DNA of 64,000 nucleotides from assembly GCF_000143415.4 (NCBI RefSeq), contig NW_003314384.1, positions 372,001-436,000 on the forward strand, given 5' to 3'. Source of the stretch: Selaginella moellendorffii. Lineage: Eukaryota; Plantae; Lycopodiophyta. The notes beneath the pieces are model-generated. The model did no database searches. It was given only the letters and a program-made list of their open reading frames with translations, and was not told the origin of the DNA. Positions 2,207-60,819 of this stretch are shown here, piece after piece. How positions within the stretch are numbered: position 1 is the first letter of the stretch; every line of letters starts with the position of its first letter. The translations under genes were made by a program, and so were the position numbers.

Positions 2207-3567
2207 ATGAAACCGATGGTGCGCCGGCGAGCTTTGGCACCCATAGCGGCACTTGCACTGGTAGTCCTCGCATGGATTGTGTTGATCCACAGTTCCATTC
2301 TCCAAAACAATGCCTTCACATTCCTCCGAGGTGAGCGGTCGAAAGCAGCACGTTCCCTGCGCTTTCACCCCGTCAAGGATTCCAAGAATGGTACCAGCTA
2401 CGTGTTCATGTCCCAGATCCAAGACACAAATCGGACAGGGGTCCCCGAATTCTTCTACTTCAACACCTCCGCCTCGTCCAGAGTCTTGTGCTTTAGAGGC
2501 AACAGCACCCGAGATGGCACCAAGAACCTGTACGCATTTGCTGAGCAGCATGTGCCAGGGGACGCGCTGCTTCTGCCGGGAACAACCCTCGTCTCGGATT
2601 CTCATTTTGATTTCGTCAACCCCTGGCATTCTATGTATAACCTCATCCAATTCGTCCACTGGAGGATGGACAGCCGCTGCCAACGGAGCGATAGAATGTT
2701 AATCTTCCACCGGGGGGAGATACGTCACGATCTGGGAGCTTGGATCCGGAGCGTCTTGGATTCCAACGGTGTCACCACAGGCGTGGACACACTGAGGTAC
2801 CATCCAGAAGGCAGGGTGGTGTGCTTCCAAAGAGCAGTTGTGAGCAGGAGAGGTATTGGGGGCGTTTCAGGGGCTGTGTTGAGGGACTTGTTCGAGCAGG
2901 TTCGGTGCCGGACCCGACAATGGTGCGGAGTAGGCAGTGGGGTTAACGATGACGACACGACCGTCCGTGTCGCGCTTGTGGCCCGAGAACGAGGGCGTGC
3001 CTTTGTCAACCTGAGTGATTGGAAGCATGCCGTCAAGCTCGTGTGTGAGGTGCGGCCCCATTGCCAGTGGTCCGTCGTCTGGTTTTCAGCGCTTGATTTC
3101 TGCTCCCAGGTAAAAATATGTCCATGACACCGACTCAATATTTAACGTTGATCCAGGTAAAGCTGATGAGCACAACCGATATTCTTGTATCTGTTCACGG
3201 TGCTCAGCTCACCAACATGATTTTCATGAATCCTGGGAGCAGAATTCTTGAGGCATTTCCCCAGGGCTGGTTGCAGCTTGCAGGGAACGGTCAATTCATC
3301 TACAAGCACCTGGCTGACTGGGCCGGCCTTGGGCATGAAGGCTATTGGAGAGACGGAGGGACGGCCAAATGCCCCATGGATTCTTCCAGTCCAGGACAAT
3401 GCTTCAGCCTTCATTACAAAAACAAGCCTGTGGGAATCAACTCGACATTTATTGTAAAGTGGCTGGCAGAAGTCCTGTCAAACTTTTCTTGCACAGCCCG
3501 GGCATCTTTGACAAAACAGGAATGCAAATGTAGCGTCGAGCCTGGGGCTGATGATAGGCTAAGCTAA
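2207..3567 (+). CDS. Glycosyltransferase family 61 (DUF563) type II membrane protein; exons 2207-3109, 3157-3567
   Basis: N-terminal TM helix, NPWHSM, FCSQV and VHGAQLTNMIFM motifs. A 47-bp GT-AG intron (3110-3156) joins the two track ORFs in frame. Confidence 0.85.
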
Positions 3568-3770: not shown

Positions 3771-5340
3771 TGAACGTATGTACATTCCTTAATGTCTCAG
3801 TGGGATTAATACAAAAACTGGGCATGCCGCCCTATCACCAAGCTACTTTACGTGATACTCTCATGTCTCAAGTGGATCTAATCTTGAAGTAGAAGTGGAC
3901 ATGGTCATATCTTTCAGATTATGTCGATGTCCAAGTCCCCTCCCAAAACCAAACAAAGAATAGTGTTAGAAGGGTGCCACTGCAAATGGATCTCATCATC
4001 AATCACCCTGCTAAAACATGGGAGCCATCTGGTTCGCCACTTCCCCAAATGATCAGGCTTTGCCCATTCCTTTAGGATGACATAGTGGAGGTGAATAGGT
4101 GCCAGAGTAAATCTCCACCATGTGGCCACAATAGCAAATACTCTTGCTTGTTACCCATCAAAGTGGTGGTGGTTACACACCTCCTAGATTGTTTGTAATC
4201 TTGTTGCTCTCCATACTGGCCAGCATTTATGGCCCATTGCCTCCTAGACCAATGTTCCGACCTCAACACCAATCTCATCCCATTGGACTCACATCTTCCA
4301 ACCATGTCATCCATGACATATGACGTGCCTCCAAGCTGGACTTTGTGGCTGGGCCACGTGCTCCTTTGAACCAGTGGAGCATATTGCCACACCTTGCTTC
4401 AAACTCTTGAATGTCCCCTATCTCATGAGCTACCTTGAGAATTTATTGCCATACTTACTTTCCCATGTCACATTCCCACAGTGCGTGCTCGGCTTGCATC
4501 GTCCTAGAACTGTTGTCCTATTGGAGCCAAAAGTGATTTTGACTTTCTTTTGAATTGGCAGCTTCTAGAAATCTAACATATTGTCCACCATCTGGTTTGT
4601 GTCAACTCCTTGCTTGATTCATTTTCTCCATAACTTTAGGATCTCTCCACATGCCTCCTCTCTATTCATCAACAAACCATCCCATGCCTCCACCTCAAAG
4701 GAGAAGAAACTGTTCAAACTTCACCTCCATTCTGTAGGATCCCAATCCAAGTCTTTGATCAGTTGCTGATGCCACCACTTGAGTGTGCCATTCCCCTCAA
4801 GTGGGTTGGTGATTGCATAATGACTAGCTATTTTGGTGCCTAGTGAAGCACTCAAATCCTCCCCTTGACCTTGTCATTAGTCACCATCAGCATGTACTAC
4901 TCTTCTCCCATTGGTAACAACATATCCTCCCTTGTCACCTAGAAGGGGCAACCTACATAGAGAGACTATGAACTAAACTTCCACATCGCCATCTCCCCAT
5001 GCTAGTGATGGGGCCATGAACACTTGAGTCCACGTGCAGCTTAACTCGTTCTCCATCTGGCTCAATCTCCCATTGCAGCATTACAAAGTCCCTGGGTTTA
5101 AAGCACCTTCTCGGCCAAGGTTGTTCCCTCTTTGCCTCAACCATGGAGGATTTTAGATCTACATGAACTTTGCAACTCTTGCTTGGGTTGAAGACTTGCA
5201 TCCTCTTTGTGGTCTTCCTGCAGACCTTGTCCAACACTCCCATAAGCTGTTTCAGTGTCCAAAAGCCCCCTATGTGCAGCTTCTTCAATATCGTGTAGTG
5301 GTCCTCTCTAACCAGCATTTGGTTACCAGCCCTGAACAAT
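3771..5340 (-). mobile_element. 5'-truncated degenerate LINE (3' part of ORF2, zinc-finger region and 3' end)
   Basis: Shares its 3' terminal motif (plus strand GTATGTACATTCC...TAATACAAAAAC) and ORF2 C-terminal motifs with the long LINE at 53-59 kb. Many stops. Confidence 0.7.
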
Positions 5341-6417
5341 TCGTTAAAGAATAATGGCTGGTTCAGTCAATCCTCCAAATTTGAGCTTGCATTCCTCGTC
5401 CATATATGGAGGCTAACACTAAAAAGAAAAACTCGCTGAACGAGTGTAGCTTATTGCCCCCTTTTCCATTTCTTCAGATTTTTCTTCAGCTCTTCTATAG
5501 CTTCTAGTAATTCATCATTCATGGTACCAGCTAGCCTTTCACCGGCCCAAACAGTTGACAAAGGTGGAACCTACAGAACAAACCACATAACATATGACTT
5601 TCAAAGCTTACCATAGCTTTTTCTTTGGAATGTTCACTCAGGCTTACTTCTTTGAAGGCCAGCTCTCCTGCTCATGGGCATGGTTGGTCCCAACCACGTT
5701 CAGCCAGAATCCTGACCGCCACCGAATGTGGTCAGCCGAATGCAGTCGGACAGTTCCGTTCGGTGATTCCGTTCGGCGAAAAAATGGTGATCGCACTCAC
5801 AGGGGCTAGATTTCTGATGCTGCTACAACTATCGCCATTGCCACTGCATCTCCACTGCTTTGCTGTTCTCCTGCTGCTATGTATGGAGCGATCCATCCAT
5901 CCACAAATGCCCAGCCCAGCAAGCCTACATAGAATCTGATGAAGAGGGCTATAGCCTATAGGAGCTGCATGCATACCAAGCTCTACAGGGCAACACTCTC
6001 CAGTCGGTCAGCCTTTGCTTTCGATTGAGCATGGAGCAGCTTGCTGAGGCCTCGCAAATCACCTAGTCCACAACGCTTGAAATTTTTGCCCTAAAATGGA
6101 AATTACGATTCCAGTGATTTCAAAGATTTGATTCTAGCAATTCTGGCACAATTGAGCAATGGTGCCCGATTGGGCATGGTCCCATGTTACCAAGTTCACT
6201 CCTTATGCTTCCAGCAAAGGAGTTGGGTGTTGGAAATGTAATTATTGTGGAAAAATGTATGGTGGTCTGCCAAAACGAATTAAGGCACATTTTGCTAATA
6301 CCCCTTTGTCTTTAGTTTCTACAACAAATCTATAGAGTAGGCATTTTGATGGAGCATTTGTTAGTTTATGGTGTATGTAGAAGTTGGTTTATGTACACAG
6401 TAACACCAGAGTGGTGG

Positions 6418-8116
6418 TGTGAGACACAAAATCCCTAGGCCCCAAAGTGGAGCCGGAAAGGATGCCATGTGGTAGTGGCCGAAGCGAAAGCCCAAACGAG
6501 TGTAACACGTTTGGACTAAAAGCTCTGACTTGGAAGGTTGAGAGCGGAAGTGGAACTCCCAACAAAGTGCTCAAGGAGCGAGCACGAAGCGAGCAATAAG
6601 CAAGGCTCCAAAAAGGGACCCAAAAAGGACCAACACATGACATGTGGAAGTGTCCGAGATGGAGTCCGAGGCGGACCCTAGTTGGAGTCCGATATGGAGT
6701 CCGAGATGGACCCGAAGTGGAGTCCGAGATGGAGTCCGATATGGAGTCCGAGATGGACCCGAAGTGGAGTCCGAGGTGGACCGAGACGGAGTCCGAGATG
6801 GAGTTCGAGATGGAATCCGAGATGGAGTCCGAGATGGACCCAAGATGGACCCGAGATGGAGTCCGAGATGGAGTCCGAGGTGGACCGAGACGGAGTCCGA
6901 GATGGACCCGAGATGGAGTCCGAGGTGGACCAAGACGGAGTCCGAGATGGAGTCCGAAATGGACCAAGACGGAGTCTGAGATGGAGTCCGAGAAGGACCC
7001 GAGATGGAGTCCGAGGTCGAGACCGAGACTGGGACCGAGATCGACCGAGACCAAGACCGGGACCGGGACTGAGACCGAGCCCGAGCCCGAGTCCGAGTCC
7101 GAGTCCGAGTTCGAGTTTGAGAGGGTGAAAGCCCAAAGCGTTCATCTCCCAGACCCTGGGGGGTTTGGTGAGCTCCAAAAGTATAGTAGGGGGAGGACTG
7201 CAGTGGAGCTAGTTTGGCTAGGAAAGGCCAGTTTGGCCCAAGAAGGCCAGACCCAGTGTTGGGTGATGAATTGACCACTGGGAAGTCCAAGACTAGAGTG
7301 AATACGGACCGACAAGCGGGGTAGCTTGGTGAAGTGTTCAAGAGCCGGCTCTAGTTCCCCCGGGAGATCGACTGGCCGATGCTCCCAGTCCAAGTGTGGG
7401 TGGCACTACCTACTTGGATACCAGGCGTGGCTCAACGGAACCTCGCTCTAAGCCCATGGCTAGAGCACCTAAAGGCGAAAGGTGGGGAGAGTACCCAGGT
7501 GGCTTGCATAAGGCCACGGTGTTCCGAAATGTTGTCCCAAAGGCCCAGACTGTGGAAAGGAAGAGGAGCAGTCCTCTGGGCTAGTGACCAAGGACACAGT
7601 CGTGTGGTGAGGAAGTCCCAGAGGACCGTGGGACTTAGTGGTCGGGCCGGTGGGCCTCGATCCAGTGGTAGTGTTGGTGAATACAGCCGTGGGCAGAAAG
7701 GGACTTGGTGGGGACCAGAAAAGGGATATTGGGGAAGGCTATTCCCCACATCTGTGGGCATCCTAAGGATGCTAAGGAGGGGATCTGGAATGATCACTCA
7801 TGGACAGATGGTCCAGTCCTTGAGAGACAGGATTGTGATGCAGGTGGTGTTAGATCACCGGTATGACCAAGGTAAAGGGGCATGGCCTTAGCGTAACGGG
7901 CTAGTATGTCGGTGGTACCTTGGGGTGTCGGTCTTGGGACCGGACACGTGGAGCACTTGGACTAAGTGCAAGGGATGAGTGGCATGGATGCCATTCTCGG
8001 GGCTAGCAAGTCCCAAGTCCTGAATTGGACTTAAGGAGGTGGTGAGTGAGACCCCTCCAAGTGGTCGAAGGCGTGGTTAAGTGACTAAAGTAGAATGGAA
8101 AAATTAATCGCTTACA
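6418..8116 (+). mobile_element. Solo LTR (TG...CA) with internal minisatellite
   Basis: TGTGAGAC...GCTTACA flanked by 5-bp TSD GGTGG. Homologous to the LTRs at 42106 and 47901. Confidence 0.93.
6655..7120 (+). repeat. LTR minisatellite of ~12-bp GAGATGGAGTCC/GAGATGGACCC units, then 6-bp GAGACC/GAGTCC units
   Basis: Directly visible. Present at variable length in every full LTR copy; it explains the many low-complexity ORFs. Confidence 0.92.
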
Positions 8117-8777
8117 GGTGGATTATGTTGAAAGTGAAGAAATGAAATTTCTAGAGATTAATTTCGACACAATTGCAATCAAACCACAATGGATGAGGAT
8201 TATAGAGATGCAAGCTAGACTTGAATCTCTTGGTATAGAAGATTTAGAGGATTATAGAGATGCAAGCTAGACTTGAATCTCTTGGTATAGAAGATTTAGC
8301 TGAAGAAGATCTTCCAAATGAGGATGTGATTGTTGAGGAAGATGCATGAGATGTCGAGGAACTTGCTGGTGATGTTGAAGAAGATGAGTAGTAGATGGTT
8401 TGGTTTGGTCTAATGCTTTGGTTTGGTTTGGTTTCATGCTTTGGTTTTCTTACTTTTATTAATGTGGTTTTACTAAAAAGGTATTTTTTTTATCAAAAAA
8501 AATTTGTGAACCATTTAGCCATTTGGCATTTCACAGCCGGTCGATAACCACAGTCGGCCGGTCGGCCAGTCGGCGTTTGGAACGGTCGGGACCAACCATG
8601 CTCATGGGTGTGGGTGTGGGTGTGGGTGTGTTGTCACAACCAGCCTTATGTACCCAGTGGAACACCACTCTTTAAGTTTGTGAGAGCCTTCTGAATTCAC
8701 TTTCTTGTCCAGCTTCATGATGTCCAGCATTGCAAATGGGGGAGTTGCTCCTAGCACATGTCCATTTTGAACTGGAC

Positions 8778-9354
8778 ACACAAACCGGTGCTTGTCCGAG
8801 ATGCGCACACGGAGCTTGTCTGGAGGAGTAGTATGGTGTTGGGTGGTGTGTGAGGAAACTAGCGGCAGCAAAAGCACTGGAAGGAGGAGATAGTGTGGCA
8901 TGACGAGGGTGGCGACGAGGAAGGTGTCCACGGATGAGAAACCCCAGGAAGAGGAGGAGGAGCTCTTGACAGATTGGAGCAAATCCATCAAGGCGGCGGC
9001 TTCTCCCGGTGGCCGGAACCAAAGGGCATGTACATTCTTCTTTTACAAGAGCTTATGGAGAGAAGCGATTCTTCACTCTTCTTCAGGAAGCCCGGCCGTG
9101 TCCAAGGATGGGAGAGGAATGCATGGAGCTCTTGCTGGGATGGTGCCGTGGACAGCACTAGCAACAAGCTCGGGTGGGTGATGGGTAGCAGCATTGACTT
9201 CCCACGATCACCATTGTCATCGAGGAGCAGCGGATCCCACGAGTAAGCAGTGAAGCAGCAGCAACGCATTTGCGATGTGGAATTCTCAGCCATGGCGAGG
9301 AGCAGCAGCAGCGTGATCTTCCTGAGCATCTCCCAGTAATAGCTTGTCCACGCA
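8778..9354. repeat. Dispersed ~570-bp GC-rich gene-like segment; copies at ~25807-26383 and inverted at ~50990-51563
   Basis: Shared translations such as MDLLQxVKSSSSSSWGFSSVDTFL and KPQEEEEELLTxWSKSIKA appear in opposite orientation near 51 kb. Confidence 0.85.
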
Positions 9355-10006
9355 AGCCGATTGTGAACTCATCTTCTAGTGAGGCCTCCATGTTGATCTT
9401 GCAGGACAGAAGTGCATCCACACTAGGGCCCTATTCCTCTCTGTTTTTTGTCGTTCTGGGTGGGGCAGACTTGAGTTCTCTTGTCCCATGCCCTAGCTCT
9501 GCTGCTGCTGCACATGCTGCTGCTCTGGTGGTGACTCCTGATCTGATCCTAGTGTACCACTCCTGCACTTCTGTGAGACATCCATCCCTGTGAACCCCCT
9601 CAGCTGCAAAAGTATTTGGGATGATTCCCCGCAAGCCTTTCTGACTTGTGACTGGCCTGAGACTCTCATGAAGTTCTTGCACTCCAGCCAGTGACCATGC
9701 AAGTGGATGAAGGGAGGTAGCTTCATCCTCTTCTCCACTCTCAGTGGACACTTCACCTTTGGCATGGCTTACACTTTCAGCTTTTTCCAAGACCTGGCCA
9801 TCTCCCAACCTAGAAACGTCCACCACTTCTATCCCATGGTTCTCATCCTATTGGGCTGCTGCTTTGCATGGCTCACTTGCTGCCTTGCACAACAGTGTTC
9901 TAGCCATTGATATAGAGGGCCCTTTCCCGTCCTGGCTTGTTTCCGTATGTGTTCCAGGACCCCGACCTTGTAACAGTCTTCCTCGTGGGAGGACCCGGCG
10001 AGATCG

Positions 10007-10560
10007 CTGAACATGTATGTACATTCCCCATGTCCCAATGGGACTAATACAAAAACTGGGCATGCCACCCTCTCAATGAGTTACTCTACATGAAGGACCT
10101 GGCGAGATCGCTGAACGTGTATGTACATTCCCCATGTTCCAATGGGACTAATACAAAAACTGGGCGTGCCGCCCTCTCAATGAGCTACTCTACGTGATCC
10201 TCTTGTCACAGCTGGACCTAGTCCTAGAGTAGAAGTGGACGTGGTCGTCTCGATTGAATCATGTCGATGTCCAAGTCTCCCCCATGAGCTGAACGTAGAA
10301 CAGAGTCCAAGAGGGACCATTGCCAGCAAATCTCGCCACCTACCATTCTGCCGAAGTATGGGAGCCACCTGGACTGCCACTCCTCTAGCTGCCTTGGTTT
10401 CACCCGCTCCTTTAGGATGGTGTAATGAAGCCGCACTGCTGCAAGAGTGAGTCTCCACCACGATGCCACCACTGTTGATATCCTCGCTTGTTTCCCATCA
10501 AAGAGACCTAGCGAGATCGTGGCACCACTTTGTGCAATCCACATTCTCTATGTGCCGTTG
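10007..10560 (-). mobile_element. Short LINE 3'-end fragment with a 104-bp tandem duplication of the terminus (9990-10093, 10094-10197)
   Basis: WWRLTLAAVRLHYTILKE..WLPYF is homologous to the other LINE copies. The terminal motif occurs twice. Confidence 0.75.
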
Positions 10561-10639
10561 TCAAAACAGTGTGATTGGGAGCAAGTAAAGGAGGTAAGAG
10601 AATGAATTTTCATTTATTCGTGATGAGGGAGAGGACAAA

Positions 10640-10697
10640 AGACAACCTGAGACCGGTTTCGTCCTTTTTGGGACTCATCAGCCAGATGTAGTTGTCT
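10640..10697 (-). ncRNA. Minimal type I hammerhead ribozyme (Penelope-like-element type)
   Basis: Minus strand reads AGACAAC-UACAU-CUGG-CUGAUGA-GUCC-CAAAAA-GGAC-GAAA-CCG-GUC^UCAG-GUUGUCU. It has an intact catalytic core, stem II, bulged stem I, palindromic ACCGGU at stem III and a GUC cleavage triplet. Confidence 0.85.
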
Positions 10698-11004
10698 AGC
10701 ATCCACCCTAACCCTAGCTTGGCGTTGACTCTAATTATATTCTGGCTCTGTTACTTGGCACAAGTCCATGTGGCGGCCATGCTAAGTGGCATCGCAGCGT
10801 TGGCTCGCGAAGATGTGAATATAGCAAAACTAAAGTTGGTTACTTAGCAACAATAGTAGTTGCAGAGAATGTCTTCAGCAGATCACTGAAGAGAGTAAGT
10901 GTTTGTCTGGTGGATGACGTACCTTTGATGCAAGATAACTTGTAAATGTGGCATGATATAGTGTATGCATTATGTCCACAATGCTTGTGTCAGTTGTACA
11001 TAAG

Positions 11005-22675: not shown

Positions 22676-25629
22676 CATGGTTGGTCCCAACCACGTTCAG
22701 CCAGAATCCTGACCGCCGCCGAATATGGTCAGCCGAATGCAGTCGGACAGTTCCGTTCGGCAAAAAAAATGGTGATCGCACTCACAGGGGCTAGATTTCT
22801 GATGCTGCTACAGCTATCGCCATTGCCACTGCATCTCCACTGCTTTGCTGTTCTCCTGCTGCTATGTATGGAGCGATCCATCCATCCACAAATGCCCAGC
22901 CCAGCAAGCCTATATAGAATCTGATGAAGAGGGCTATAGCCTATAGGAGCTGCATGCATACCAAGCTCTACAGGGCAACACTCTCCAGTCGGTCAGCCTT
23001 TGCTTTCGATTGAGCATGGAGCAGCTTGCTGAGGCCTCGCAAATCACCTAGTCCACAACGCTTGAAATTTTTGCCCTAAAATGGAAATTACGATTCCAGT
23101 GATTTCAGAGATTTGATTCTAGCAATTCTGGCACAATTGAGCAATGGTGCCCGATTGGGCATGGTCCCATGTTACCAAGTTCACTCCTTATGCTTCCAGC
23201 AAAGGAGTTGGGTGTTGGAAATGTAATTATTGTGGAAAAATGTATGGTGGTCTGCCAAAACGAATTAAGGCACATTTTGCTAAAATTTCTGGGCATGATA
23301 TTGAAGCATGTAGTGCTTCAAATGTGTCTCTTCATGTTCAGAACCAAATTCACCAAATGTTTATGGAGAAAATTGCAAATACCCCTTTGTCTTTAGTTTC
23401 TACAACAAATCTATAGAGTAGGCATTTTGATGGAGCATTTGTTGGTTTATGGTGTATGTAGAAGTTGGTTTATGTACACAGTAACACCAGAGTGGTGGTG
23501 TGAGACACAAAATCCCTAGGCCCCAAAGTGGAGCCGGAAAGGGTGCCATGTGGTAGTGGCCGAAGCGAAAGCCCAAACGAGTGTAACACGTTTGGACTAA
23601 AAGCTCTGACTTGGAAGGTTGAGAGCGGAAGTGGAACTCCCAACAAAGTGCTCAAGGAGCGAGCACGAAGCGAGCAATAAGCAAGGCTCCAAAAAGGGAC
23701 CCAAAAAGGACCAACACATGACATGTGGAAGTGTCCGAGATGGAGTCCGAGGCGGACCCTAGTTGGAGTCCGATATGGAGTCCGAGATGGACCCGAAGTG
23801 GAGTCCGAGATGGAGTCCGATATGGAGTCCGAGATGGACCCGAAGTGGAGTCCGAGGTGGACCGAGACGGAGTCCGAGATGGAGTTCGAGATGGAATCCG
23901 AGATGGAGTCCGAGATGGACCCAAGATGGACCCGAGATGGAGTCCGAGATGGAGTCCGAGGTGGACCGAGACGGAGTCCGAGATGGACCCGAGATGGAGT
24001 CCGAGGTGGACCAAGACGGAGTCCGAGATGGAGTCCGAAATGGACCAAGACGGAGTCTGAGATGGAGTCCGAGAAGGACCCGAGATGGAGTCCGAGGTCG
24101 AGACCGAGACTGGGACCGAGATCGACCGAGACCAAGACCGGGACCGGGACTGAGACCGAGCCCGAGCCCGAGTCCGAGTCCGAGTCCGAGTTCGAGTTTG
24201 AGAGGGTGAAAGCCCAAAGCGTTCATCTCCCAGACCCTGGGGGGTTTGGTGAGCTCCAAAAGTATAGTAGGGGGAGGACTGTAGTGGAGCTAGTTTGGCT
24301 AGGAAAGGCCAGTTTGGCCCAAGAAGGCCAGACCCAGTGTTGGGTGATGAATTGACCACTGGGAAGTCCAAGACTAGAGTGAATACTGACCGACAAGCGG
24401 GGTAGCTTGGTGAAGTGTTCAAGAGCCGGCTCTAGTTCCCCCGGGAGATCGACTGGCCGATGCTCCCAGTCCAAGTGTGGGTGGCACTACCTACTTGGAT
24501 ACCAAGCATGGCTCAACGGAACCTCGCTCTAAGCCCATGGCTAGAGCACCTAAAGGCGAAAGGTGGGGAGAGTACCCAGGTGACTTGCATAAGGCCACGG
24601 TGTTCCGAAATGTTGTCCCAAAGGCCCAGACTGTGGAAAGGAAGAGGAGCAGTCCTCTGGGCTAGTGACCAAGGACACAGTCGTGTGGTGAGGAAGTCCC
24701 AGAGGACCGTGGGACTTAGTGGTCGGGCCGGTGGGCCTCGATCCAGTGGTAGTGTTGGTGAATACGGCCGTGGGCAGAAAGGGACTTGGTGGGGACCAGA
24801 AAAGGGATATTGGGGAAGGATATTCCCCACATCTGTGGGCATCCTAAGGATGCTAAGGAGGGGATCTGGAATGATCACTCATGGACAGATGGTCCAGTCC
24901 TTGAGAGACAGGATTGTGATGCAGGTGGTGTTAGATCACCGGTATGACCAAGGTAAAGGGGCATGGCCTTAGCGTAACGGGCTAGTATGTCGGTGGTACC
25001 TTGGGGTGTCGGTCTTGGGACCGGACACGTGGAGCACTTGGACTAAGTGCAAGGGATGAGTGGCATGGATGCCATTCTCGGGGCTAGCAAGTCCCAAGTC
25101 CTGAATTGGACTTAAGGAGGTGGTGAGTGAGACCCCTCCAAGTGGTCGAAGGCGTGGTTAAGTGACTAAAGTAGAATGGAAAAATTAATCGCTTACAGGT
25201 GGATTATGTTGAAAGTGAAGAAATGAAATTTCTAGAGATTAATTTCGACACAATTGCAATCAAACCACAATGGATGAGGATTATAGAGATGCAAGCTAGA
25301 CTTGAATCTCTTGGTATAGAAGATTTAGCTGAAGAAGATCTTCCAAATGAGGATGTGATTGTTGAGGAAGATGCCAGAGATGTCGAGGAACTTGCTGAGG
25401 ATGTTGAAGAAGATGAGTAGTAGATGGTTTGGTTTGGTCTAATGCTTTGGTTTGGTTTGGTTTCATGCTTTGGTTTTCTTACTTTTATTAATGTGGTTTT
25501 ACTAAAAAGGTATTTTTTTTATCAAAAAAAATTTGTGAACCATTTAGCCATTTGGCATTTCACAGCCGGTCGATAACCACAGTCGGCCGGTCGGCCAGTC
25601 GGCGTTTGGAACGGTCGGGACCAACCATG
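22676..25629 (+). mobile_element. hAT element copy 2 with solo LTR 23499-25197
   Basis: Same TIRs and TSD CTCATGGG. The BED ORF (23144-23416) is longer than in copy 1. LTR TSD is GGTGG. Confidence 0.9.
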
Positions 25630-27668
25630 CTCATGGGTGTGGGTGTGGGTGTGGGTGTGTTGTCACAACCAGCCTTATGTACCCAGTGGAACACCACTCT
25701 TTAAGTTTGTGAGAGCCTTCTGAATTCACTTTCTTGTCCAGCTTCATGATGTCCAGCATTGCAAATGGGGGAGTTGCTCCTAGCACATGTCCATTTTGAA
25801 CTGGACACACAAACCGGTGCTTGTCCGAGATGCGCACACGGAGCTTGTCTGGAGGAGTAGTATGGTGTTGGGTGGTGTGTGAGGAAACTAGCGGCAGCAA
25901 AAGCACTGGAAGGAGGAGATAGTGTGGCATGACGAGGGTGGCGACGAGGAAGGTGTCCACGGATGAGAAACCCCAGGAAGAGGAGGAGGAGCTCTTGACA
26001 GATTGGAGCAAATCCATCAAGGCGGCGGCTTCTCCCGGTGGCCGGAACCAAAGGGCATGTACATTCTTCTTTTACAAGAGCTTATGGAGAGAAGCGATTC
26101 TTCGCTCTTCTTCAGGAAGCCCGGCCGTGTCCAAGGATGGGAGAGGAATGCATGGAGCTCTTGCTGGGATGGTGCCGTGGACAGCACTAGCAACAAGCTT
26201 GGGTGGGTGATGGGTAGCAGCATTGACTTCCCACGATCACCATTGTCATCGAGGAGCAGCGGATCCCACGAGTAAGCAGTGAAGCAGCAGCAACGCATTT
26301 GCGATGTGGAATTCTCAGCCATGGCGAGGAGCAGCAGCAGCGTGATCTTCCTGAGCATCTCCCAGTAATAGCTTGTCCACGCAAGCCGATTGTGAACTCA
26401 TCTTCTAGTGAGGCCTCCATGTTGATCTTGCAGGACAGAAGTGCATCCACACTAGGGCCCTATTCCTCTCTGTTTTTTGTCGTTCCGGGTGGGGCAGACT
26501 TGAGTTCTCTTGTCCCATGCCCTAGCTCTGCTGCTGCTGCACATGCTGCTGCTCTGGTGGTGACTCCTGATCTGATCCTAGTGTACCACTCCTGCACTTC
26601 TGTGAGACATCCATCCCTGTGAACCCCCTCAGCTGCAAAAGTATTTGGGATGATTCCCCGCAAGCCTTTCTGACTTGTGACTGGCCTGAGACTCTCATGA
26701 AGTTCTTGCACTCTAGCCAGTGACCATGCAAGTGGATGAAGGGAGGTATCTTCATCCTCTTCTCCACTCTCAGTGGACACTTCACCTTTGGCATGGCTTA
26801 CACTTTCAGCTTTTTCCAAGACCTGGCCATCTCCCAACCTAGAAACGTCCACCTCTTCTATCCCATGGTTCTCATCCTATTGGGCTGCTTCTTTGCATGG
26901 CTCACTTGCTGCCTTGCACAACAGTGTTCTAGCCATTGATATAGAGGGCCCTTTCCCGTTCTGGCTTGTTTCCGTATGTGTTCCAGGACCCCGACCTTGT
27001 AACAGTCTTCCTCGTGGGAGGACCCGGCGAGATCGCTGAACATGTATGTACATTCCCCATGTCCCAATGGGACTAATACAAAAACTGGGCATGCCACCCT
27101 CTCAATGAGTTACTCTACATGAAGGACCTGGCGAGATCGCTGAACGTGTATGTACATTCCCCATGTTCCAATGGGACTAATACAAAAACTGGGCGTGCCG
27201 CCCTCTCAATGAGCTACTCTACGTGATCCTCTTGTCACAGCTGGACCTAGTCCTAGAGTAGAAGTGGACGTGGTCGTCTCGATTGAATCATGTCGATGTC
27301 CAAGTCTCCCCCATGAGCTGAACGTAGAACAGAGTCCAAGAGGGACCATTGCCAGCAAATCTCGCCACCTACCATTCTGCCGAAGTATGGGAGCCACCTG
27401 GACTGCCACTCCTCTAGCTGCCTTGGTTTCACCCGCTCCTTTAGGATGGTGTAATGAAGCCGCACTGCTGCAAGAGTGAGTCTCCACCACGATGCCACCA
27501 CTGTTGATATCCTCGCTTGTTTCCCATCAAAGAGACCTAGCGAGATCATGGCACCACTTTGTGCAATCCACATTCTCTGTGTGCCGTTGTCAAAACAGTG
27601 TGATTGAGAGCAAGTAAAGGAGGTAAGAGAATGAATTTTCATTTATTCGTGATGAGGGAGAGGACAAA

Positions 27669-27726
27669 AGACAACCTGAGACCGGTTTCGTCCTTTTTGG
27701 GACTCATCAGCCAGATGTAGTTGTCT
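27669..27726 (-). ncRNA. Hammerhead ribozyme, copy 2
   Basis: Identical to 10640-10697. Confidence 0.85.
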
Positions 27727-28812
27727 AGCATCTACCCTAACCCTAGCTTGGCATTGACTCTAATTATATTCTGGCTCTGTTACTTGGCACAAGTCCATGT
27801 GGCGGCCATGCTAAGTGGCATCGCAGCGTTGGCTCGCGAAGATGTGAATATAGCAAAACTAAAGTTGGTTACTTAGCAACAATAGTAGTTGCAGAGAATG
27901 TCTTCAGCAGATCACTGAAGAGAGTAAGTGTTTGTCTGGTGGATGACGTACCTTTGATGCAAGATAACTTGTAAATGTGGCATGATATAGTGTATGCATT
28001 ATGTCCACAATGCTTGTGTCAGTTGTACATAAGTTAAACGCTCATCTAGATTACATCCTCAACTCTATAAAGAAAACTTTATATTGTTCCCAAGATCCCA
28101 AAGTCATTCTCTTATTAACCCCTTTCTATCCACTGCATTGTGCACAAGTTCAAGCATGAACTAGAGTGGAGAGCCATGTCCTCTCGACATACTACTCCTC
28201 AAGGACAGATCCATATCTAGGATCTTCCAATTCCAATACAAGTGGTGATATACTTGGCCACGAATAAGAGTTGCATTAAGGAATAGCTCTAATACCAAAT
28301 TGTAAACAACTAAATTTTCCATTCTACTTTAATTACTTAACCACACTTCCGACCACTTAGAGGAGTCTCACTCACAACCTCCATAAATCCTATTCCGGAC
28401 TTAGAGCTTGCTAGCCTCGAGAATGGCATCCCTACCACTCAACCTTTACATTTGGTCCAAGTGCTCCACATGTTTAATCCCATGATCAACACCCAAAAAC
28501 ACCACCAACATATCAGCCCGTTATTGCCCTTTTATCTTTACCACACTAGTGGTCCAACACCACTTGCATCACAGTCCCATCTCTCAAAGACTAGACGATC
28601 CGTCCATCAATGGTCATCCAAGATGCACTCCTTAGCATCTTTAGGATGCCTACAAAAATGGGGAATAGCCTTCTCCAATATCCCTTTTTTAGACTCCACC
28701 AAATCCTTTTCTATCCATGGGTGTGTTCATCAACACTGCCATTGGGTCAAGGCCCACAACTCCGACCACTAAGTCCTATTGTCCTTTAGGACTTCCTCAC
28801 CATATAACCATA

Positions 28813-30337
28813 TGTGAGACACAAAATCCCTAGGCCCCAAAGTGGAGCCGGAAGGGTGCCACGTGGTAGTGGCCGAAACGAAAGCCAAACGAGCGTAACA
28901 CGTTTGGACTAAAAGATTCAACTTGATAGGTTGAGAGTGGGAGTGGAACTCCCAACAAAGTGCTTGAGGAATGAGCATGAAGCGAGCAACAAGCGAGGCT
29001 CTAAAAAAGGACCCAAAAAGGACTAACACATGACACGTGGAAGTGTCCAAGATGGACCCAAGATGGAGTCCGAGATGGAGTCCGAGGTGGACCTGAGGTG
29101 GAGTCTGAGATGGAGTCCGAGAAGGACCTGAGATGGAGTCCAAGATGGACCCGAGATGGAGACCGAGGTCGAGACCAAGACCAGAACCGAGACTGAGACC
29201 GAGACCGAGACCAAGACCGAGACGGAGACTGAGACCGAGACTGAGACCGAGACCGAGACCGGGACTGGGACCGGGACCGGGACCAAGCCCAAAACCAAGC
29301 TCGAGCTCGAGCCCGAGTCCGAGTTCAAGTCCGAGTCCGAGTCCGAGTTCGAGTCTGAGAGGGTGAAAGCCCAAAGCGTTCGTCTCCTAGACCCTAGGGG
29401 GTTTGGTGAGCTCCAAAAGTATAGTAAGGGGGAGGACTGCAGTGGAGCTAGTTTGGCCCAGGAAGGCCAGACCCAGTGTTGGGTGATGAACTAACCACTG
29501 GGAAGTCCAAAATTAAAGTGAATACGGACCGACAAACGGGGTAGCTTGGTGAAGTGTTCAAGAGCTAGCTCTAGTTCCCCCGAGAGATCGACTGGCCAAT
29601 GCTCCCAGTCCAAGTGTGGGTGGCACTACCTACTTGGATACTAGGCGTGGCTCAATGGAACCTCGCTCTAAGCCCATGGCTAGAGCACCTAAAGGCAAAA
29701 GGTGGGGAGAGTACCCACGGGGCTCACGTAAGTCCACGGTGTTCCGAAATGTTGTCCCGAAGTCCCAAATGGGGGAAAAGAGGAGGAGCAATCCCCGACC
29801 ACTAAGTCCCATGGTCCTCTGGGGCTTCCTCACCATATGCTTGTATCCTTAGTCACTACACTAGAGCCTGTGGGCCTTGATTTAGTGGCAGTGTCGGCGA
29901 ACATGGCCATGGACAGAAAAGGGACTTGGTGGGGACCGGAAAAGGGACATTGGGGGAAGGTTATTCCCCATGTCTGTGGGCATCCTAAGGATGCTAAGGA
30001 GTGGATCTGGGATGATCACTCATGAACGGATGGCCCACTCTTTGAGAGACGGGACTGTGATGGAGGTGGTGTCAGACCACTGGTGTGACCAAGGTGAATG
30101 GGCATGGCCATAGCGTAACGGGCTAATATGTTAGTGGTACCTTGGAGTGTCGGTCATGGGATCGGTCACGTGGAGCACTTGGACCAAGTGCAAAGGTTGA
30201 GTGGCGGGGATGCCATTCTCGGGGCTAGCAAGCCCAAATCTGAAATAGGACTTATGGAGGTTGTGAGTGAAACTCGTCCAAGTGGTCAGAGGTGTGGTTA
30301 AGTGACTAAAGTAGAATGGAAAAATTAGTCGCTTACA
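28813..30337 (+). mobile_element. Solo LTR, copy of 11784-13468 with a 160-bp shorter minisatellite
   Basis: TG...CA termini and TSD CCATA. Confidence 0.92.
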
Positions 30338-32893
30338 CCATATCCTTGATCACTACACCAAAGAATTGCCCCTCTTCCTTTCCACAATCTAGGATTTTGG
30401 GATAACATTTTGGAACACTGTGGCCCTATGCAAGCCTCATGGGTACTCTCCCCACTTTCTACCTTTGGGTGTTCTAGCCATAGAGCTAGAGCAAGGTTCT
30501 ATTGAGCCATGCCAAATTGGCTTTTCTTTATTGAGAGTCAATGACTATTGAAAAATGAATGTCCTTATATTCCAAACCATCACCATACCCTAGTGAGTTG
30601 GGACTTGAACCCAAACACTAAAAAGTTAGGACTTGAACCCAACCTCCGCATATGCATCTATGGGCGGCATCACCTAGGATTCCTAGCATGACTCCTAACA
30701 TCAATGCACCAACTTATACCCAAAGCAAGTTACAAATCACAATTTAGGAACTTAGTTCCTCCAAACTGTCAAGTCCTCTCACTTGATAAGTCTGTGATCA
30801 TGCATAGACTCCTCTATACTTGGCCCTATAGGCCACCCTTTTTGAAGTTAGCACCTTTAACTAGGGTCATTGTTCCCTTGACTTGCCAATCTCACTTAGT
30901 AAGTCATTTGACTAGCATAACATGGTTTTATATATAAGCATGAAACTTCTCAACCATTGACTTTCGTTCAAAGCTATCTTTTTTAACATTGATCCTTTAG
31001 GACTATTCCTTGATTCCAATGTCGTTTGCTAATTGTAATTATATTTTGTAGTTTAACATTTTTATTGGATGAAACTGGAAAGAATGCAAACTTAACATGA
31101 GCTGGAGTTGGTTTATCTGGATCTTTTATAAAATAGATATTAATTACATTAATACATTGACGTGTGGAACAATTGCTAGACAAAGTGACTTTTGTCAATA
31201 CACCAGTGTGAAATGGTTGCACATATTCTAAGCATCTTTCCAACTAACACCATAATTGTTTGATACAAGTGATACAAAATGATGCTATGTCACAATTAAT
31301 GTTTTTTATGGGAAGGGGAGGTTCTAGCTTAGGATAGTATAATATGTGGAAGTAAATAAAACTTATAATATAAAATATATTTATAATTTTTGTTTATTGT
31401 TTCCACATAAATGTGAAGCTTGGGCTTTTTTTCACAAAGAAAAAAATCATAAGACACTCATTTAAGTATTTAAATTTAAATTTTTAATATTAAAATTATT
31501 TTTTTTAAATTTTTTTTACAATGATGCAACTTAAAAAAATTTATGTTTGTGCTTGCAAACACAATAACATATGAGTGAATTGTTTTTAAAGATTTGCTCA
31601 AATTTAGATCTGAAATTTTTAAATATGATTATATTTACTTACAGAATGCTAAAATAAGGGAGCTAATTGATTAGAATTTAGAACATATGAGACAAAAAAA
31701 TAAATGTAAATTAATTTTTCAACTACATAAATAAGTTTTCATATATATTTCTTTCATCATGAAAGGCATACACAAAAAAAAACCTTTAAAAAAAACTATA
31801 AACCTTCGCAAATGTAACTATTAAATTGTTAAAAACTCATTTGTTATATCAATTTTAAGAATTTTTAGCATTGAAACTTTTTTTAAAAATTCAAATAAAC
31901 TAATGTGTTTTATGTTCACAAGATTATGAAAATATTTATAGGCCGTAAATTTTGAGCATATAATTACTAGGAAATGCAAACTAAGCACTTAGGTTTTAAG
32001 TGCTACATGAAAAACATAATATTATGTTTTGTAGCACAAAAACAAAAATCATAATATAATTTCACTATTAGGAACCTAACAAATTCTAAAAATATTTTAA
32101 AAGATTCTAGAAGGTTCTAAAAGTTTCGTGGATTATTCTAAAATATTCTTAAAAGCTAGATTCTAAAGAAATATTCCTAGAATATTTCTAATAAAAGTTA
32201 GAAGAAAATATTCCTAAAAGAATGCAACATGGGGATTAGAAACAAGCAGCATGCGCACCAGCTAGTTTGAAGTATGATTGCGTTATTGCAACAAGTATCA
32301 TGATCAATCCATCTAGGTTGTTTGAGTGTGCTTCCCATACCTGGAAATCTCTGCAATTCCACCCAAAACGCTTCCAATACAGGCTTCTGAGCTCCCCCGT
32401 TCGCTTAGACTTGTTCATTTTTGCATGTCTGTAGACATGTTGGTTCTTGTTTGTTGCGGCAACTAAAAACTTTCCAATTTCCAAGACACATTTGTACAAA
32501 TCCAATTCTTCCAACATCCTAACCAGTCCGAAGGCAGCACCTTGGTGGAATCTTCATGCGGCTTTATTCCTCCCCACCATATACTCAAAATCATCCTCAT
32601 TGAATTCCATGGTGTAGCAATGTCACTAGCTGAAACCTTATGTGCCTGCGCATTTCAAATTCGCCCAAAGCGAAATCCATGTAAGTCAGCCTATATTGAA
32701 GTTGAGTTAGTATTGCTCCTTGTGGATAACACTCTGATGAAGCTCATTTTAAGTTTAACAAAGCTTCACAATTGCATCTTTTTATTGAAATCAAGTACAA
32801 GCGCACCACACAATTATTCCCATGATCAATCATCCTTGTCAAGTTAGACCAGCAAGACAAGGCATGATTATACATACGACTGCTATATATATA

Positions 32894-34708
32894 TCATGTA
32901 GGACATGAACAAGCGTTGACGCTCATGTTGACATCACCACCAGCTGCAGCAACAATACTTGTTGGAGCATCCGCAACAGCTTCAGCCTGGTTCCACATGA
33001 CCACCCAGCCGCCTCTGCAATCCTTGTCATCGTCGTAACCTTTGCATGAACATGATGCCGAGTCATATTTGCAGCTGTTGTTCACACCATCCCAGGTGCC
33101 TCCCTGTGAGGTGGTACGAGTTGTAGCCCGACCATTGGAATCCAGCACAATACAAGAATCTCCGTAGCAGTAGCAAGTGAAGCCAATTCCTCCAACATGA
33201 CAGTCGTCGTCGTTCTTGCACCCCTCACAAGCCCTGTGGCACTCAAAGTGCTTCGAGTCCCCAGAAATGTCCTTGACAGCTACAAACTGCTGCAGGATCA
33301 CACTACCGCGCGGAGTGCTCTTGGTCAGGCACTGGAATCCCCAGTAGCCCTGGTAGTAAGCCTGTAAGTTCCTGCCCACTTGCCACTGGCTACTCCCAAC
33401 AGGGAAACGCCTGAGCACAACTTCCCATATGGGAGTGAACTTGTACTGCACAGCCAAGCTGCTGGTTGCTCCCTCCTCCATGAACGTGAACATCAGTTCC
33501 TTGCTCCGGTCCTGAGTGAGTTTTGCTCGAGTCTCGGGAGTACCACCTTTCACAAACAGCTTGTTGTGCATTTCCAAGTTCGCCGACTCCCGCTTGCTCT
33601 CCTGGCTTACACCCGCACAGCCTTCCACCCCGGACTGAAGCCCCTCCAGCTTTAGGCACGCCTGGGCCTTGAACTGCTGCTGCGAGTAGGATTTGGAAGA
33701 CTTGGCGCTGCTCCATTGCTGCAGCAAGGAGCCCGTGTAGATGGTCGAGATGTAGTGCGAGCCCCACTTTGACAAAAACTGTTGGAAAGGTGTCCAGCTG
33801 CTGCTTACTCCTGGCTCAGCCACCTCCACAGGCAACGTCTGCAGCTCCTCGAAAAACTTGGGATTCAGAGGCAGGTGGTCCACCTTGTTGCTGTTAAGGG
33901 TCTTCATCTTGGAAATAGAGACCGCGTCCAAGGACAGTGCTGAGATCTCTTGCTCCCCGGCACTGATTGAGTTGAAGGTGCTCTGTAGTGTTGCAGAAAC
34001 TGCTTGATAGTTCCCAGAGATGCTGGCTTCCGCACCAAGCTGCACCCCCCAATTGCAAATTGTCATTAATGACATACACTGTCACATCTCAGCAAAGACT
34101 TCTTGTTGAGTTTTGCAACATACGTACCGACATGTAGAACCTCTCTGTGCTCTCATAGAAGCTCGTCTGGTAGTCAACTTTGTTCACATCCAAGATGATC
34201 ACTGCATCTTCATTCAGGTTGGAAAAGATGTTGAGACCGCCAGCTTGGGTTTCCAGAATGTTGGCTCTGGGGAGGTAGACCCCGGTCCCCAGAGAACCCT
34301 CTGTTCAAAATGTTCAAAATGCAAGTTGGTCAACTACAGTGCTACCTACCAATTCAGGCTTACCTTGCTCTCCAAGCAGTTGGAGTAGCTCCCCAGCCGA
34401 AAGCACCAGCCCGCCTTGCTGAGGAACGGTGGTAGCCTTGGACAGGGAAACACTCATGTCTGTCTTGTTAACCGTCGACCACTCCAGGCCTCTGTTGTCC
34501 AGAGCATCCAGCAGCACATTGTTTGGCTGCACCAGCACCAGGAGGCCTCCCTTGGGAATGGGAGTTTCCGCACTTTTGCTGCTGGCGAAGAACGCCAATA
34601 TGCAAAAGAGAAAGAACAGTGCTGCTAGCTCGTGATACCTGGAAAACTGGTTAGTGGCAACACAATGGCACTGGAGAGAGTGCATAGCTACCTTTTAAGA
34701 AATGCCAT
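32894..34708 (-). CDS. Secreted MACPF protein, copy 2; exons 34708-34692, 34638-34364, 34300-34128, 34039-32894
   Basis: ORF translations are identical to copy 1 (offset 16869). Confidence 0.88.
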
Positions 34709-36176
34709 GGTTGAGATTGAACTTGATGAATTTGCTGAATATGCTGAATACATGAATGCCTTGTGTCCATCATCCAATTTATACTGCCTCTGCTACGGTT
34801 CAAACCCCACTGTACCTTTTTCTAAAATCACTGTACCCTTTTCGCCTTGGGTCATGGCAAGCATGCTTCTAATTTTCAAGCTTGATTTAATCACGTGCCT
34901 GAACATACGGAGGCATCCATCCCTCGTGTTGATCAGGCTAAATGCGCTGGTGTTAGTTTTGTAAGTGAATCCCCAAGCCACATAAAGAATATGGAAGCAA
35001 CTGTAGCCTTCTCACCTGTGTCCATTAATCGTTGAAGCTATTTGATATAGTCGAGTAGTTGTACTTGCACCAAGAACTAATGGACGCCCGTAGTCCTGGA
35101 AACGTATTATTTTTACAGATCTCACTGCTTGTCCTTCAACACAAAAGTGGAACAAAGTCAGAATCACTAACAGACTAAAACAAAAGGGCGTATAAACCTT
35201 ATTTCAGGTACCTGGATTGGCATGCAAAAGACTCTTAACACACGCACAACTTGAGCTCCCGCTTCCAAACTACGCTAGTCGGTCTGTCATTGCCTCTCAC
35301 TGTGCAGTGTCCTGTCCAGAATGATCCCCCGATTCTCAGGACCGTTTCCAGCGGAAGCTGGAATGTCAGATATAATCAGGACACTTTATCTGTCTGCTAA
35401 CCTCGCAGAGAATCTCAGCAGCATTAATTTGCGCCAGTGGATCATCTGCCTTTCGAAGTTCCTTTTCTAAGACAGAGAAAATGCCGGGACTGCGTACTTT
35501 CTCAGCAGCTAGTTGTGGTGCAGATGCAGAGTCATTTGCTACATACTTGAGGAGAGGTTCCTGGGATAGAAATTCAAGACATACTAGTTCAACGGGTGAC
35601 TTAGCCAAAATGCACCAGCTGCTTGCGCCACAGTAGAGTCCCTGGCAAAGCGAAACTATTGAGCTCGATTTGTTAATTAGAATATGTATGTACTCATTAG
35701 ATAAAGTGCCTCACTAAAGGATGAACAATGCCAAAAGCTGCTTAGGCAATGCAGTTTCGGCAGAGCTTGGATTGCCATTTTAATGTCAAGGAATTTGGCT
35801 ATCTGTATGAGTAGACACAGAAAAATCAGCTAATGAACCCACTAGAAAAAGAGAAAAGCTGTCTCACTGAGTTGCACTTGCACGTAAGCTTTCGTCTCGG
35901 GGTGGTCACTCTTTATAAGCATTATATATCATCTGCATTCTGGAAGTTTAGAATAGGGCCTAGTATACTTTTCTTGTTGTTCATAATTTGCCCCATACAT
36001 ATATGCATTTTTTCAAATCTTAAATAAACCCCCAATTCTTATATATATGTGGAATATTCTGGTTATTTTTGTATAAAGCATATATATATTTCCATTAATA
36101 TAAAAAAATTATTTCACCCTTCTATGACAATTGATATTCTTGCTTTTATCTTTGATGAAATTATCAAAAACTTCCC

Positions 36177-36276
36177 NNNNNNNNNNNNNNNNNNNNNNNN
36201 NNNNNNNNNNNNNNNNNNNNNNNNNNNNNNNNNNNNNNNNNNNNNNNNNNNNNNNNNNNNNNNNNNNNNNNNNNNN
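36177..36276. other. Assembly gap (100 N)
   Basis: Run of N. Confidence 1.
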
Positions 36277-39200: not shown

Positions 39201-40067
39201 CTGAATCAGCTCATTAACTATCAGAGCATCTGTCTCTACCGAACTGTAATCCCCTAAGTCCGCTACTACTCTCTTCCCATCATGCTCTATCTTTTCCCAA
39301 ATATTTTCCTGTTTCCTGTGAGCTTTAGAGAAAAGCAATGTACCTGCTGCCTTGCATTCTGCTAGCATGTTCATATTAGTCACACTATGAACAACATCAG
39401 CTCCGTCATAACACCATTCATTCCCGATCATTCCTCCTATTTTGGAGAAAAAGTTCTTGCAAATGTCAGAACCAGTTCTATTAATTGGGACTGGCAAATG
39501 TGAATGGTGATCCCAAAAATATCTATCTCAAAAGCAAAATTAACAAAAGAAAAATATATATGAAACATACCTGATTAGAAGGATGACAAAGTGATATGAT
39601 AATTGAATGTCCAAGAAGGTTTCCTTGCTGATGAAGTTGTGTTCCAAGTTCCACTTGCTTTCCTTCAGAATCCACAACCTCCATAAACAAAAGAAGAAGG
39701 ACACCATTGATGCAGCTCTCACTCGCTCTCCAAGGCTCAAGTACGGGTGCAAAAAGATATCAATATATGATGCCACCACAGCAAGATAAGTTTCGGTCCC
39801 CAGCGTACGTGAAGGTTTTCTATATGTTGTTTCTCGCATAATTGAAAGACAAACTTGCACTGGCCTGCTACAAAGTCACTGAGCAGCACCCCAGTTTTGT
39901 TTATCAGAGTGCCTGACATCCCCAAGTGGCAGTCTGTGTTTACCATGAAACTTTTCAAAAACTTCCCAAATGTCATTCAAATGCACAAACTCATCCCCTA
40001 GAAACAGTTGTCTTATTGCACTATGCAATGGACTTCTTCCCATTATGCACATGTATCAAAAGGTTCC
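36277..40067 (+). repeat. Duplication unit 3, internally deleted: LINE piece, hAT left part (from 37421) and LTR start (38244-38464) fused to the P-like transposase 3' part
   Basis: 36277-38464 corresponds to 4535-6638 and 38465-40067 to 19327-20929. Confidence 0.92.
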
Positions 40068-59000: not shown

Positions 59001-59440
59001 CGGTGTTTCCCTGTGCCTTCTCATCTGGTCATTTGGCGTCTCCAAGCCCTTCTCTTCTTCTGGATCCATCCTTAACTCTTGTGCATGATGACCTATTGGT
59101 ATCTCCACAACCGTGGCTGCCCTCATCGCTGCTGCCGCTGCCCTAGTGGTGACGCCCTGTTCTTACTTGGATTAGGGCATGTCCTGCCTTTGGTTTTTCC
59201 AAAGTCCGTCTTCCCCATGTTGAGAGCCACTCTAAGTCCCATGCACTTAGTGATGGGGGTGAGGAAGTTCAAGTCCAAAGTGCTGCTTGTGGAAACCTCT
59301 TCACGTGGTCCGTCACCACTGGCTAGATTACCTGAGCCTAGGAATCCACTTGCTTTCTGTACTTCCCTGTTAAGTGCATAGCTTTGCTGTAGAAGGCATC
59401 CATGCTGCGTGGGTGGTGAGGCTGGTTGAGACATCCCTGG
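53097..59440 (-). mobile_element. Near full-length degenerate L1-clade LINE (ORF1 with RRM-like part, APE endonuclease, RT, zf-RVT)
   Basis: VNVYAP and LVVGDFNMV (endonuclease); LDFEKAYDRVNW, RQGCPLA and FVDDT (RT); CKECGDIKTVKHVMWEC (zinc finger). Many stops. The 5' boundary is approximate. Confidence 0.9.
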
Positions 59441-60772: not shown

Positions 60773-60819
60773 CTCTGAAATGAAATGTGTCAGCATAAAA
60801 AATGGCACAAGTCAATTTT

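Follow-up and report, generated by a model that had tools for sequence, protein, structure and literature searches.

Does a hammerhead motif that lies beside a telomere-like sequence in Selaginella moellendorffii mark a retroelement, and if it does, what is left of that element? The question is raised by a locus near 10.6 kb in a 64,000-nt stretch of contig NW_003314384.1 (positions 372,001 to 436,000 of the forward strand), which we call the window and which supplies all coordinates below. The explanation that we consider probable is that the locus preserves, at an interstitial site and in decayed form, a piece of the 3' non-coding (pseudo-LTR) module of an S. moellendorffii Penelope-like retroelement (PLE). 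The ribozyme itself is the already-known hammerhead of spikemoss PLEs, published in 2014 (PMC4209133).

Hammerhead motif and its predicted fold

A preliminary description of this DNA, made from the letters alone, had proposed a hammerhead with a complete core, helices I and II, a GUC triplet and a cut between 10651 and 10650. The Rfam Hammerhead_1 search that it suggested as a check gave a match above the threshold at both candidate loci. In an Rfam 15 scan of the 64-kb window, RF00163 scored 37.5 bits, compared with the gathering score of 34, at 10687–10645 and at 27716–27674, both on the minus strand, and each match covered the full model (positions 1–45; E = 7.5e-06 as computed for the 64-kb window). 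With permissive filters, the longer HH9 model (RF02275) matched 10699–10632 on the minus strand with 38.7 bits and E = 2.9e-06, which falls short of HH9 membership (gathering score 52), the helix III loop being absent. Across all 64 kb, these filters brought up no hammerheads other than those at the two loci. The features of the first locus are the following.

10645–10687, minus strand: core of a type I hammerhead (proximal helix I, CUGAUGA, helix II, GAAA, helix III ACCGGU, GUC), from the RF00163 match
10632–10699, minus strand: extended hammerhead of HH9-like architecture, adding the distal helix I AGACAAC/GUUGUCU and the UACAU internal loop, from the sub-threshold RF02275 alignment
10650–10651, minus strand: predicted self-cleavage site, after C17 at 10651, with N1.1 at 10650, from a count of positions along the Rfam alignment

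Read 5' to 3' on the minus strand, the parts follow each other as distal helix I, an asymmetric UACAU internal loop, proximal helix I, CUGAUGA, helix II, GAAA, ACCGGU, and C17. All core elements required of a hammerhead (CUGAnGA, GAAA, and an NUH triplet) are there, as CUGAUGA, GAAA, and GUC. Proximal helix I, CUGG/UCAG, consists of three Watson–Crick pairs and a G.U pair; the distal part of the helix is also present in the MFE fold. Helix II is GUCC/GGAC, closed by the loop CAAAAA. Helix III has two base pairs (A-U and C-G) and a 2-nt loop, and the minus-strand sequence confirms that the whole of it is the palindrome ACCGGU, as had been claimed. The topology is that of type I, helix I being open and the other two helices closed. 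The Rfam match and the alignment count thus bear out the core, both longer helices, the triplet and the position of the cut.

Could such a motif arise by chance? The core is short, and minimal descriptors yield many random matches in large genomes. However, the E values under both models are low, the match is full-length with distal helix I and tertiary-contact loops, and the species is known to carry the hammerhead (PMC4209133). A chance match to the consensus has a negligible probability in our view, and this reading is effectively refuted by the covariance-model scores.

The same loops refine the class of the ribozyme. It had been described as a minimal type I hammerhead as in PLEs; the PLE type stands, but the motif is not minimal, being canonical and metazoan-style with helix I/II tertiary-contact loops like those of HH9. 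Judged by its sequence, it is a 'canonical' type I hammerhead and not a 'min-HHR' in the terms of Cervera and De la Pena. When it is aligned with HH9, its helix I and II pairs deviate from the consensus in a compensated manner, in favour of a real ribozyme.

Similarity to HH9 also raises the possibility that the host has domesticated an HH9-like ribozyme for a cellular role unrelated to transposons, perhaps within an intron or UTR. In the HH9 alignment, loop II CCAAAAAG and the UAC bulge of helix I are common to the Selaginella hammerhead and HH9, close to the amniote consensus. Still, the score does not reach the gathering threshold of HH9, the loop of HH9 is missing from helix III, the locus lies among repeats (a LINE fragment, an inverted copy of repeat family Y, and tandem arrays), and there is no surrounding gene model or Pfam domain. 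We regard domestication as very improbable.

Energy predictions bear on how the ribozyme could work. For the 68-nt monomer RNA, the MFE structure (−18.7 kcal/mol) has the core GGCUG paired with CGGUC, while the active-like fold, with helices I and II formed and the core free, is predicted at −12.5 kcal/mol and takes an ensemble probability of about 1e-5. The homodimer co-fold reaches −46.9 kcal/mol and contains the ACCGGU:ACCGGU helix. According to these predictions, the monomer would misfold and cleavage would depend on a dimer. The dimer formation through the palindromic helix III envisaged in the preliminary description is matched both by the 2-bp helix III and by the co-fold. In the classic view such hammerheads cut as dimers, and the fold predictions agree with it (PMC4209133).

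The 17-kb duplication and the 5' side of the ribozyme

The second hammerhead belongs to a large duplication.

3930–36176, no strand assigned: tandem duplication of ∼17 kb with arms 3930–20929 and 20927–36176, from self-BLAST (98.6–99.8% identity)
27674–27716, minus strand: identical hammerhead in arm 2, from the Rfam match and self-BLAST

The two hammerheads occupy equivalent positions of the arms, with an offset of 17,029 bp. Five transitions separate the arms over the surrounding 1,017 bp, none of them inside the ribozyme. There is one hammerhead per arm, and the nearest partner of each is 17 kb away. Apart from the duplication arm, sensitive self-BLAST found no other copies of the module in the window. 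Arm 2 ends at a scaffold gap of 100 N (36177–36276). Past the gap, 36277–38464 repeats 21532–23719, and 38462–40067 repeats 19324–20929.

The public S. moellendorffii assembly contains both haplotypes; hence, the duplication, taken as 3930–40067, may be genuinely segmental or may result, at least in part, from a mis-join of haplotypes. Either way, the second hammerhead is a duplicate and not an independent insertion, and it provides no independent evidence; since the two copies are identical, the window also holds no covariation information. The second copy that had been reported at 27669–27726 thus exists, but self-BLAST identifies it as the other arm of the duplication and not as a copy in its own right.

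Both arms also carry a 393-aa ORF with a MACPF (MAC/perforin) domain (Pfam E = 4e-09), at 16025–17206 and 32894–34075 on the minus strand. Outside the duplication, the plus-strand ORF at 2207–3127, part of a glycosyltransferase 61 gene, has a product that matches an annotated S. moellendorffii protein exactly and clusters at ≥90% with SELMODRAFT_130433 and SELMODRAFT_134069 (glycosyltransferase 61). Near the other end of the window, the minus-strand ORF at 59933–60808 encodes an NLI-interacting-factor-like phosphatase.

Upstream of the ribozyme, on its sense strand, two short motifs stand out.

10706–10716, minus strand: telomere-like 11-mer, TAGGGTTAGGG in the sense-strand reading, 6 nt 5' of the extended hammerhead, with the orientation taken from the sequence
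10734–10739, minus strand: TATAAT, a TATA-like sequence of putative function, 36 nt 5' of distal helix I

The 11-mer, CCCTAACCCTA on the plus strand, is found in the window, as an exact match, at the two hammerhead loci and nowhere else. Its spacing is that of a hexamer, and the plant telomere repeat is a heptamer. It lies on the upstream side in G-strand sense relative to the ribozyme, and the order on the sense strand is TATAAT, the telomere-like motif, and the ribozyme. Tandem CCCTAAA (a dimer) occurs nowhere in the 64-kb window, nor were C-strand telomere repeats found after the hammerhead tail.

Under the terminal-addition model, an element has C-strand sequence at both flanks when read along its sense strand. 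In the published design of EN-deficient PLEs, reverse-complement C-strand repeats follow directly downstream of the hammerhead and are able to pair with a G-rich overhang (PMC6431247; PMC8557442). Since the 11-mer is on the wrong side and the wrong strand for this design, it is neither a priming tail nor a normal terminal joint. Telomere-like hexamers are indeed present by the ribozyme, but the telomeric link of EN-deficient PLEs that the preliminary description set beside them needs correction, as the motif is upstream and in G-strand sense. The 11-mer may be an intrinsic part of the module, placed between TATAAT and the ribozyme; it may be a short telomere-type scar at a rearrangement joint; or it may be there by chance, the probability of finding an exact 11-mer within 30 nt being roughly 1e-3 to 1e-4 by our estimate. 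Extended pairing of the G-rich motif with a C/U-rich stretch 3' of the ribozyme, which appears in the MFE fold, was no better than in shuffled sequences (z = −1.2) and was rejected.

Further upstream, the segment 10718–11006 has no other copy within the window, and at 11007 a different repeat begins. This is family Y, a 1.7–2 kb repeat with six direct copies at 82–91% identity (6411–8116, 11784–13469, 23492–25197, 29045–30338, 42103–44116, and 47894–49639) and with inverted partial copies at 11007–11773 and 28036–28802. Each copy of the family contains long (GTCCGAGATGGA)n and hexamer arrays, an ORF of 166–170 aa without a Pfam match, and a weak SCARNA18-like Rfam match far below the threshold. 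Between two of the direct copies, at 44000–48000, the plus strand has a strong purine skew (GC skew about +0.26, AT skew about +0.14).

The 3' tail and its joint with a LINE

On the 3' side, the ribozyme continues into a tail that ends abruptly at a LINE fragment.

10504–10644, minus strand: 3' tail of the hammerhead module, 141 nt, ending in copy 1 of a direct repeat (10504–10519), with the end placed at the alignment breakpoint 10503/10504
10007–10503, minus strand: part of the 3' UTR of an L1-type LINE of family X, truncated at its 5' end and recognized by the 3' end that it shares with other X copies
9990–10006, minus strand: copy 3 of the direct repeat, 17 nt, a candidate target-site duplication, lacking in the other two X copies at their 3' ends

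The breakpoint 10503/10504, which comes from the alignment with the two other copies of family X, is 147 nt past the cut site. The family has three copies in the window, at 3771–5366, 53099–54757, and 10007–10503, with 66–70% identity and all on the minus strand. The fragment at the hammerhead locus matches 3771–4163 and 53099–53491, and the matches have a common 3' end. Its length is ∼0.5 kb, compared with at least 1.6 kb for the copies elsewhere, so that the 5' extents vary and the 3' end is shared. Because the 53.1-kb copy is continued on the same strand by relics of an L1 ORF2, family X is the 3' end of that LINE family. The relics, at 55588–55986 and 56089–56463 on the minus strand, match residues 565–697 and 412–521 of LINE-1 ORF2p, respectively, and are collinear with it. 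Hence, 10007–10503 combines a common 3' end, variable 5' truncation, a flanking 16/17-nt repeat and, via the 53.1-kb copy, collinearity with ORF2, and by these sequence features it is a severely 5'-truncated L1-type insertion.

Searches with ORFs of the family added little. The minus-strand ORF at 4956–5366, inside family X, had no matches in a full HMMER search, which is what a poorly conserved C-terminal or UTR region would give, and three ORFs searched against PDB for the identity of the family gave nothing significant. The 53-kb copy is part of a degenerate L1-type LINE of ∼6.1 kb (53099–59212, minus strand), of which 3771–5366 is a 5'-truncated relative. As for target-site duplications of these two copies, nothing was found beyond a weak 12-nt candidate at the 53-kb LINE, TCCCCAGGTTGA / TCCCCATGTTGA at 53084 and 59212, of which ∼0.3 are expected by chance.

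The LINE fragment at the hammerhead locus consists of 393 nt, a 17-nt repeat (10094–10110), and then its last 87 nt repeated. Three copies of the 16/17-nt motif are present, with the plus-strand sequences AGACCTAGCGAGATCG at 10504–10519, AGGACCTGGCGAGATCG at 10094–10110, and AGGACCCGGCGAGATCG at 9990–10006, that is, at the joint between the tail and the LINE, after the 3' end of the LINE, and again after the repeated last 87 nt. Thus, 87 nt of the LINE end and the 17-nt motif together make up a 104-bp tandem repeat. The tandem units (9990–10197) were also considered as degenerate hammerheads, for which the alignment gave no support. Neither of the other two X copies ends with the motif, and it is most simply read as the target-site duplication of a site within the module tail. 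With the LINE removed in silico, this site is predicted to form a hairpin with 9989–9960. An inverted repeat pair of 0.58 kb with 91% identity has one arm (8775–9358) on the 3' side of the hammerhead, ∼0.6 kb past the stump of the LINE, and the other at 50988–51567.

The joint allows a different account of the module, namely, that it is a short non-autonomous non-coding element, retrozyme-like or SINE-like, moved by an L1-type LINE and not by a PLE. This would account for an interstitial copy without a telomere tract, and the LINE fragment does abut the tail in the same orientation. Moreover, the last ∼40–60 nt of the tail resemble the local LINE 3' unit. The identity is 73% over 40 nt without gaps, and the local alignment score of 39–40 compares with 18.7 ± 3.4 for shuffled sequences, none of 500 of which reached it. 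Putative retrozyme-like tandem hammerheads have been reported from S. moellendorffii by De la Pena and Cervera in 2017 (PMC5680766). However, much of the similarity score comes from a 15-nt core of the repeat, which can equally be read as a target-site duplication, and the other two LINE copies in the window have no such motif at their ends. A retrozyme has at least two hammerheads in direct repeats around a short non-coding unit, with type III motifs in the LTRs in plants or a tandem array of type I motifs in animals. This layout is not seen here either: the two hammerheads of the window are 17 kb apart in duplicate arms, one in each, and form no tandem array. Mobilization by a LINE therefore appears rather unlikely.

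Origin of the locus and comparison with known systems

We return to the reading of the locus as a PLE fragment. For 44 stop-to-stop ORFs from 8247–11800, Pfam scans gave no reverse transcriptase (RT) or other retroelement match at E ≤ 0.1, so no PLE RT was found near the hammerhead. Among 76 larger ORFs of the window, with the second duplication arm left out, there was one RVT_1 match, the L1-type relic at 55588–55986 (minus strand), 45 kb away. The preliminary description was therefore right to call the ribozyme an orphan. The lack of a PLE/TERT-like RT ORF upstream of the hammerhead fits a fragment and not a full member of the EN-deficient, telomere-associated PLEs of Coprina/Athena type.

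We infer the PLE origin of the module from the literature. The host is known to carry hammerhead-bearing PLEs (PMC4209133; PMC8557442). In particular, Cervera and De la Pena reported in 2014 that pseudo-LTRs of S. moellendorffii PLEs carry canonical type I hammerheads, with nucleotides for helix I/II tertiary contacts like those of the Schistosoma and human motifs (PMC4209133). The same likeness is seen in our HH9 alignment. In EN-deficient PLEs, the hammerhead is found together with telomere-complementary repeats (PMC8557442; PMC6431247), and telomere-associated PLEs of S. moellendorffii go back to Gladyshev and Arkhipova (2007), as cited in PMC4209133 and PMC8557442. A second hammerhead-bearing PLE lineage of spike mosses, PLE-X, in 28S rDNA, was described by Craig et al. 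in 2021 (PMC8557442), and the fragment may belong to either lineage.

On this basis, the history of the locus could be as follows. In the active element, the 3' module would have carried a canonical type I hammerhead; transcripts with two hammerheads would have paired through the palindromic ACCGGU to give a 6-bp helix III, and cleavage of the dimer after GUC would have produced the processed retrotransposition RNA. What remains at the locus would be the ribozyme, ≤0.3 kb of upstream sequence, and the 141-nt tail. The tail would then have been struck by an L1-type LINE, or retro-copied jointly with it, leaving ∼0.5 kb of the LINE 3' end between the 16/17-nt direct repeats. Afterwards, the region would have been duplicated, or mis-scaffolded, as a 17-kb unit. 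Lacking an RT, a telomere tract, and any partner ribozyme within 17 kb, the copy is most likely inert, a dead relic.

A more elaborate reading of the same features is that the G-strand motif is a conserved working part of the module, or that the L1-type LINE homes to the 17-nt site in the manner of R2. The motif could act at the transcription start behind the TATA-like box, or could have as its pairing partner either the C-rich priming tail or the C/U-rich stretch that follows the ribozyme. The LINE may home to the site ∼131–147 nt downstream of the cut and borrow the PLE promoter and hammerhead to free its RNA. The LINE joint is a single locus, too little to show targeting. We consider these two readings quite improbable.

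As a decayed PLE fragment, the locus is one more relic of a published ribozyme-bearing retroelement, and alone it matters little. It does suggest that telomere-associated hammerhead modules persist inside chromosomes too, and it documents letter by letter a joint of a module tail with an L1-type LINE and its 16/17-nt duplication. A telomere-like motif beside a hammerhead need not be a priming tail, and its side and strand need checking.

The locus shares with the hammerheads of S. moellendorffii PLEs the species, the type I topology, helices I–III, the loop nucleotides similar to Schistosoma and HH9, the short palindromic helix III, and the association with telomere-like sequence. Unlike the EN-deficient Coprina-type PLEs of the same species, it has no RT ORF, no pair of pseudo-LTRs, and no C-strand telomere repeats downstream. 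Its 11-mer is upstream, in G-strand sense and with hexamer spacing, its tail is interrupted by a LINE, and it is interstitial.

The core, the length of helix II, loop II CCAAAAAG, the UAC bulge, and the two-part helix I are all like those of the amniote HH9 and Schistosoma-type hammerheads (RF02275, RF00163). In contrast to amniote HH9, helix III is ACCGGU only, without the 5-nt loop, the score is below the HH9 threshold, and the hammerhead is in a plant genome in a transposon context.

Non-LTR retrozymes and newt satellite 2 (Cervera and De la Pena, 2020; bioRxiv 10.64898/2026.07.22.740005) are similar in having a type I hammerhead whose palindromic helix III is weak and requires dimerization, and in their proposed descent from PLE pseudo-LTRs. 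Compared with non-LTR retrozymes, the locus has no tandem array, with one motif per 17-kb arm, and no evidence of circular RNA.

The last parallel is with R2, for which Eickbush and Eickbush reportedly described in 2010 an HDV-like ribozyme and ribozyme-assisted 5' processing of site-specific LINEs. Unlike in R2, it is the target element that owns the ribozyme here, the LINE is reduced to a 5'-truncated stump of 0.5 kb, and the arrangement comes from a single locus. The feature in common is a self-cleaving ribozyme upstream of a LINE on the same strand, here ∼130–150 nt from the joint, and by analogy, co-transcription followed by cleavage could in principle release the LINE RNA at this joint.
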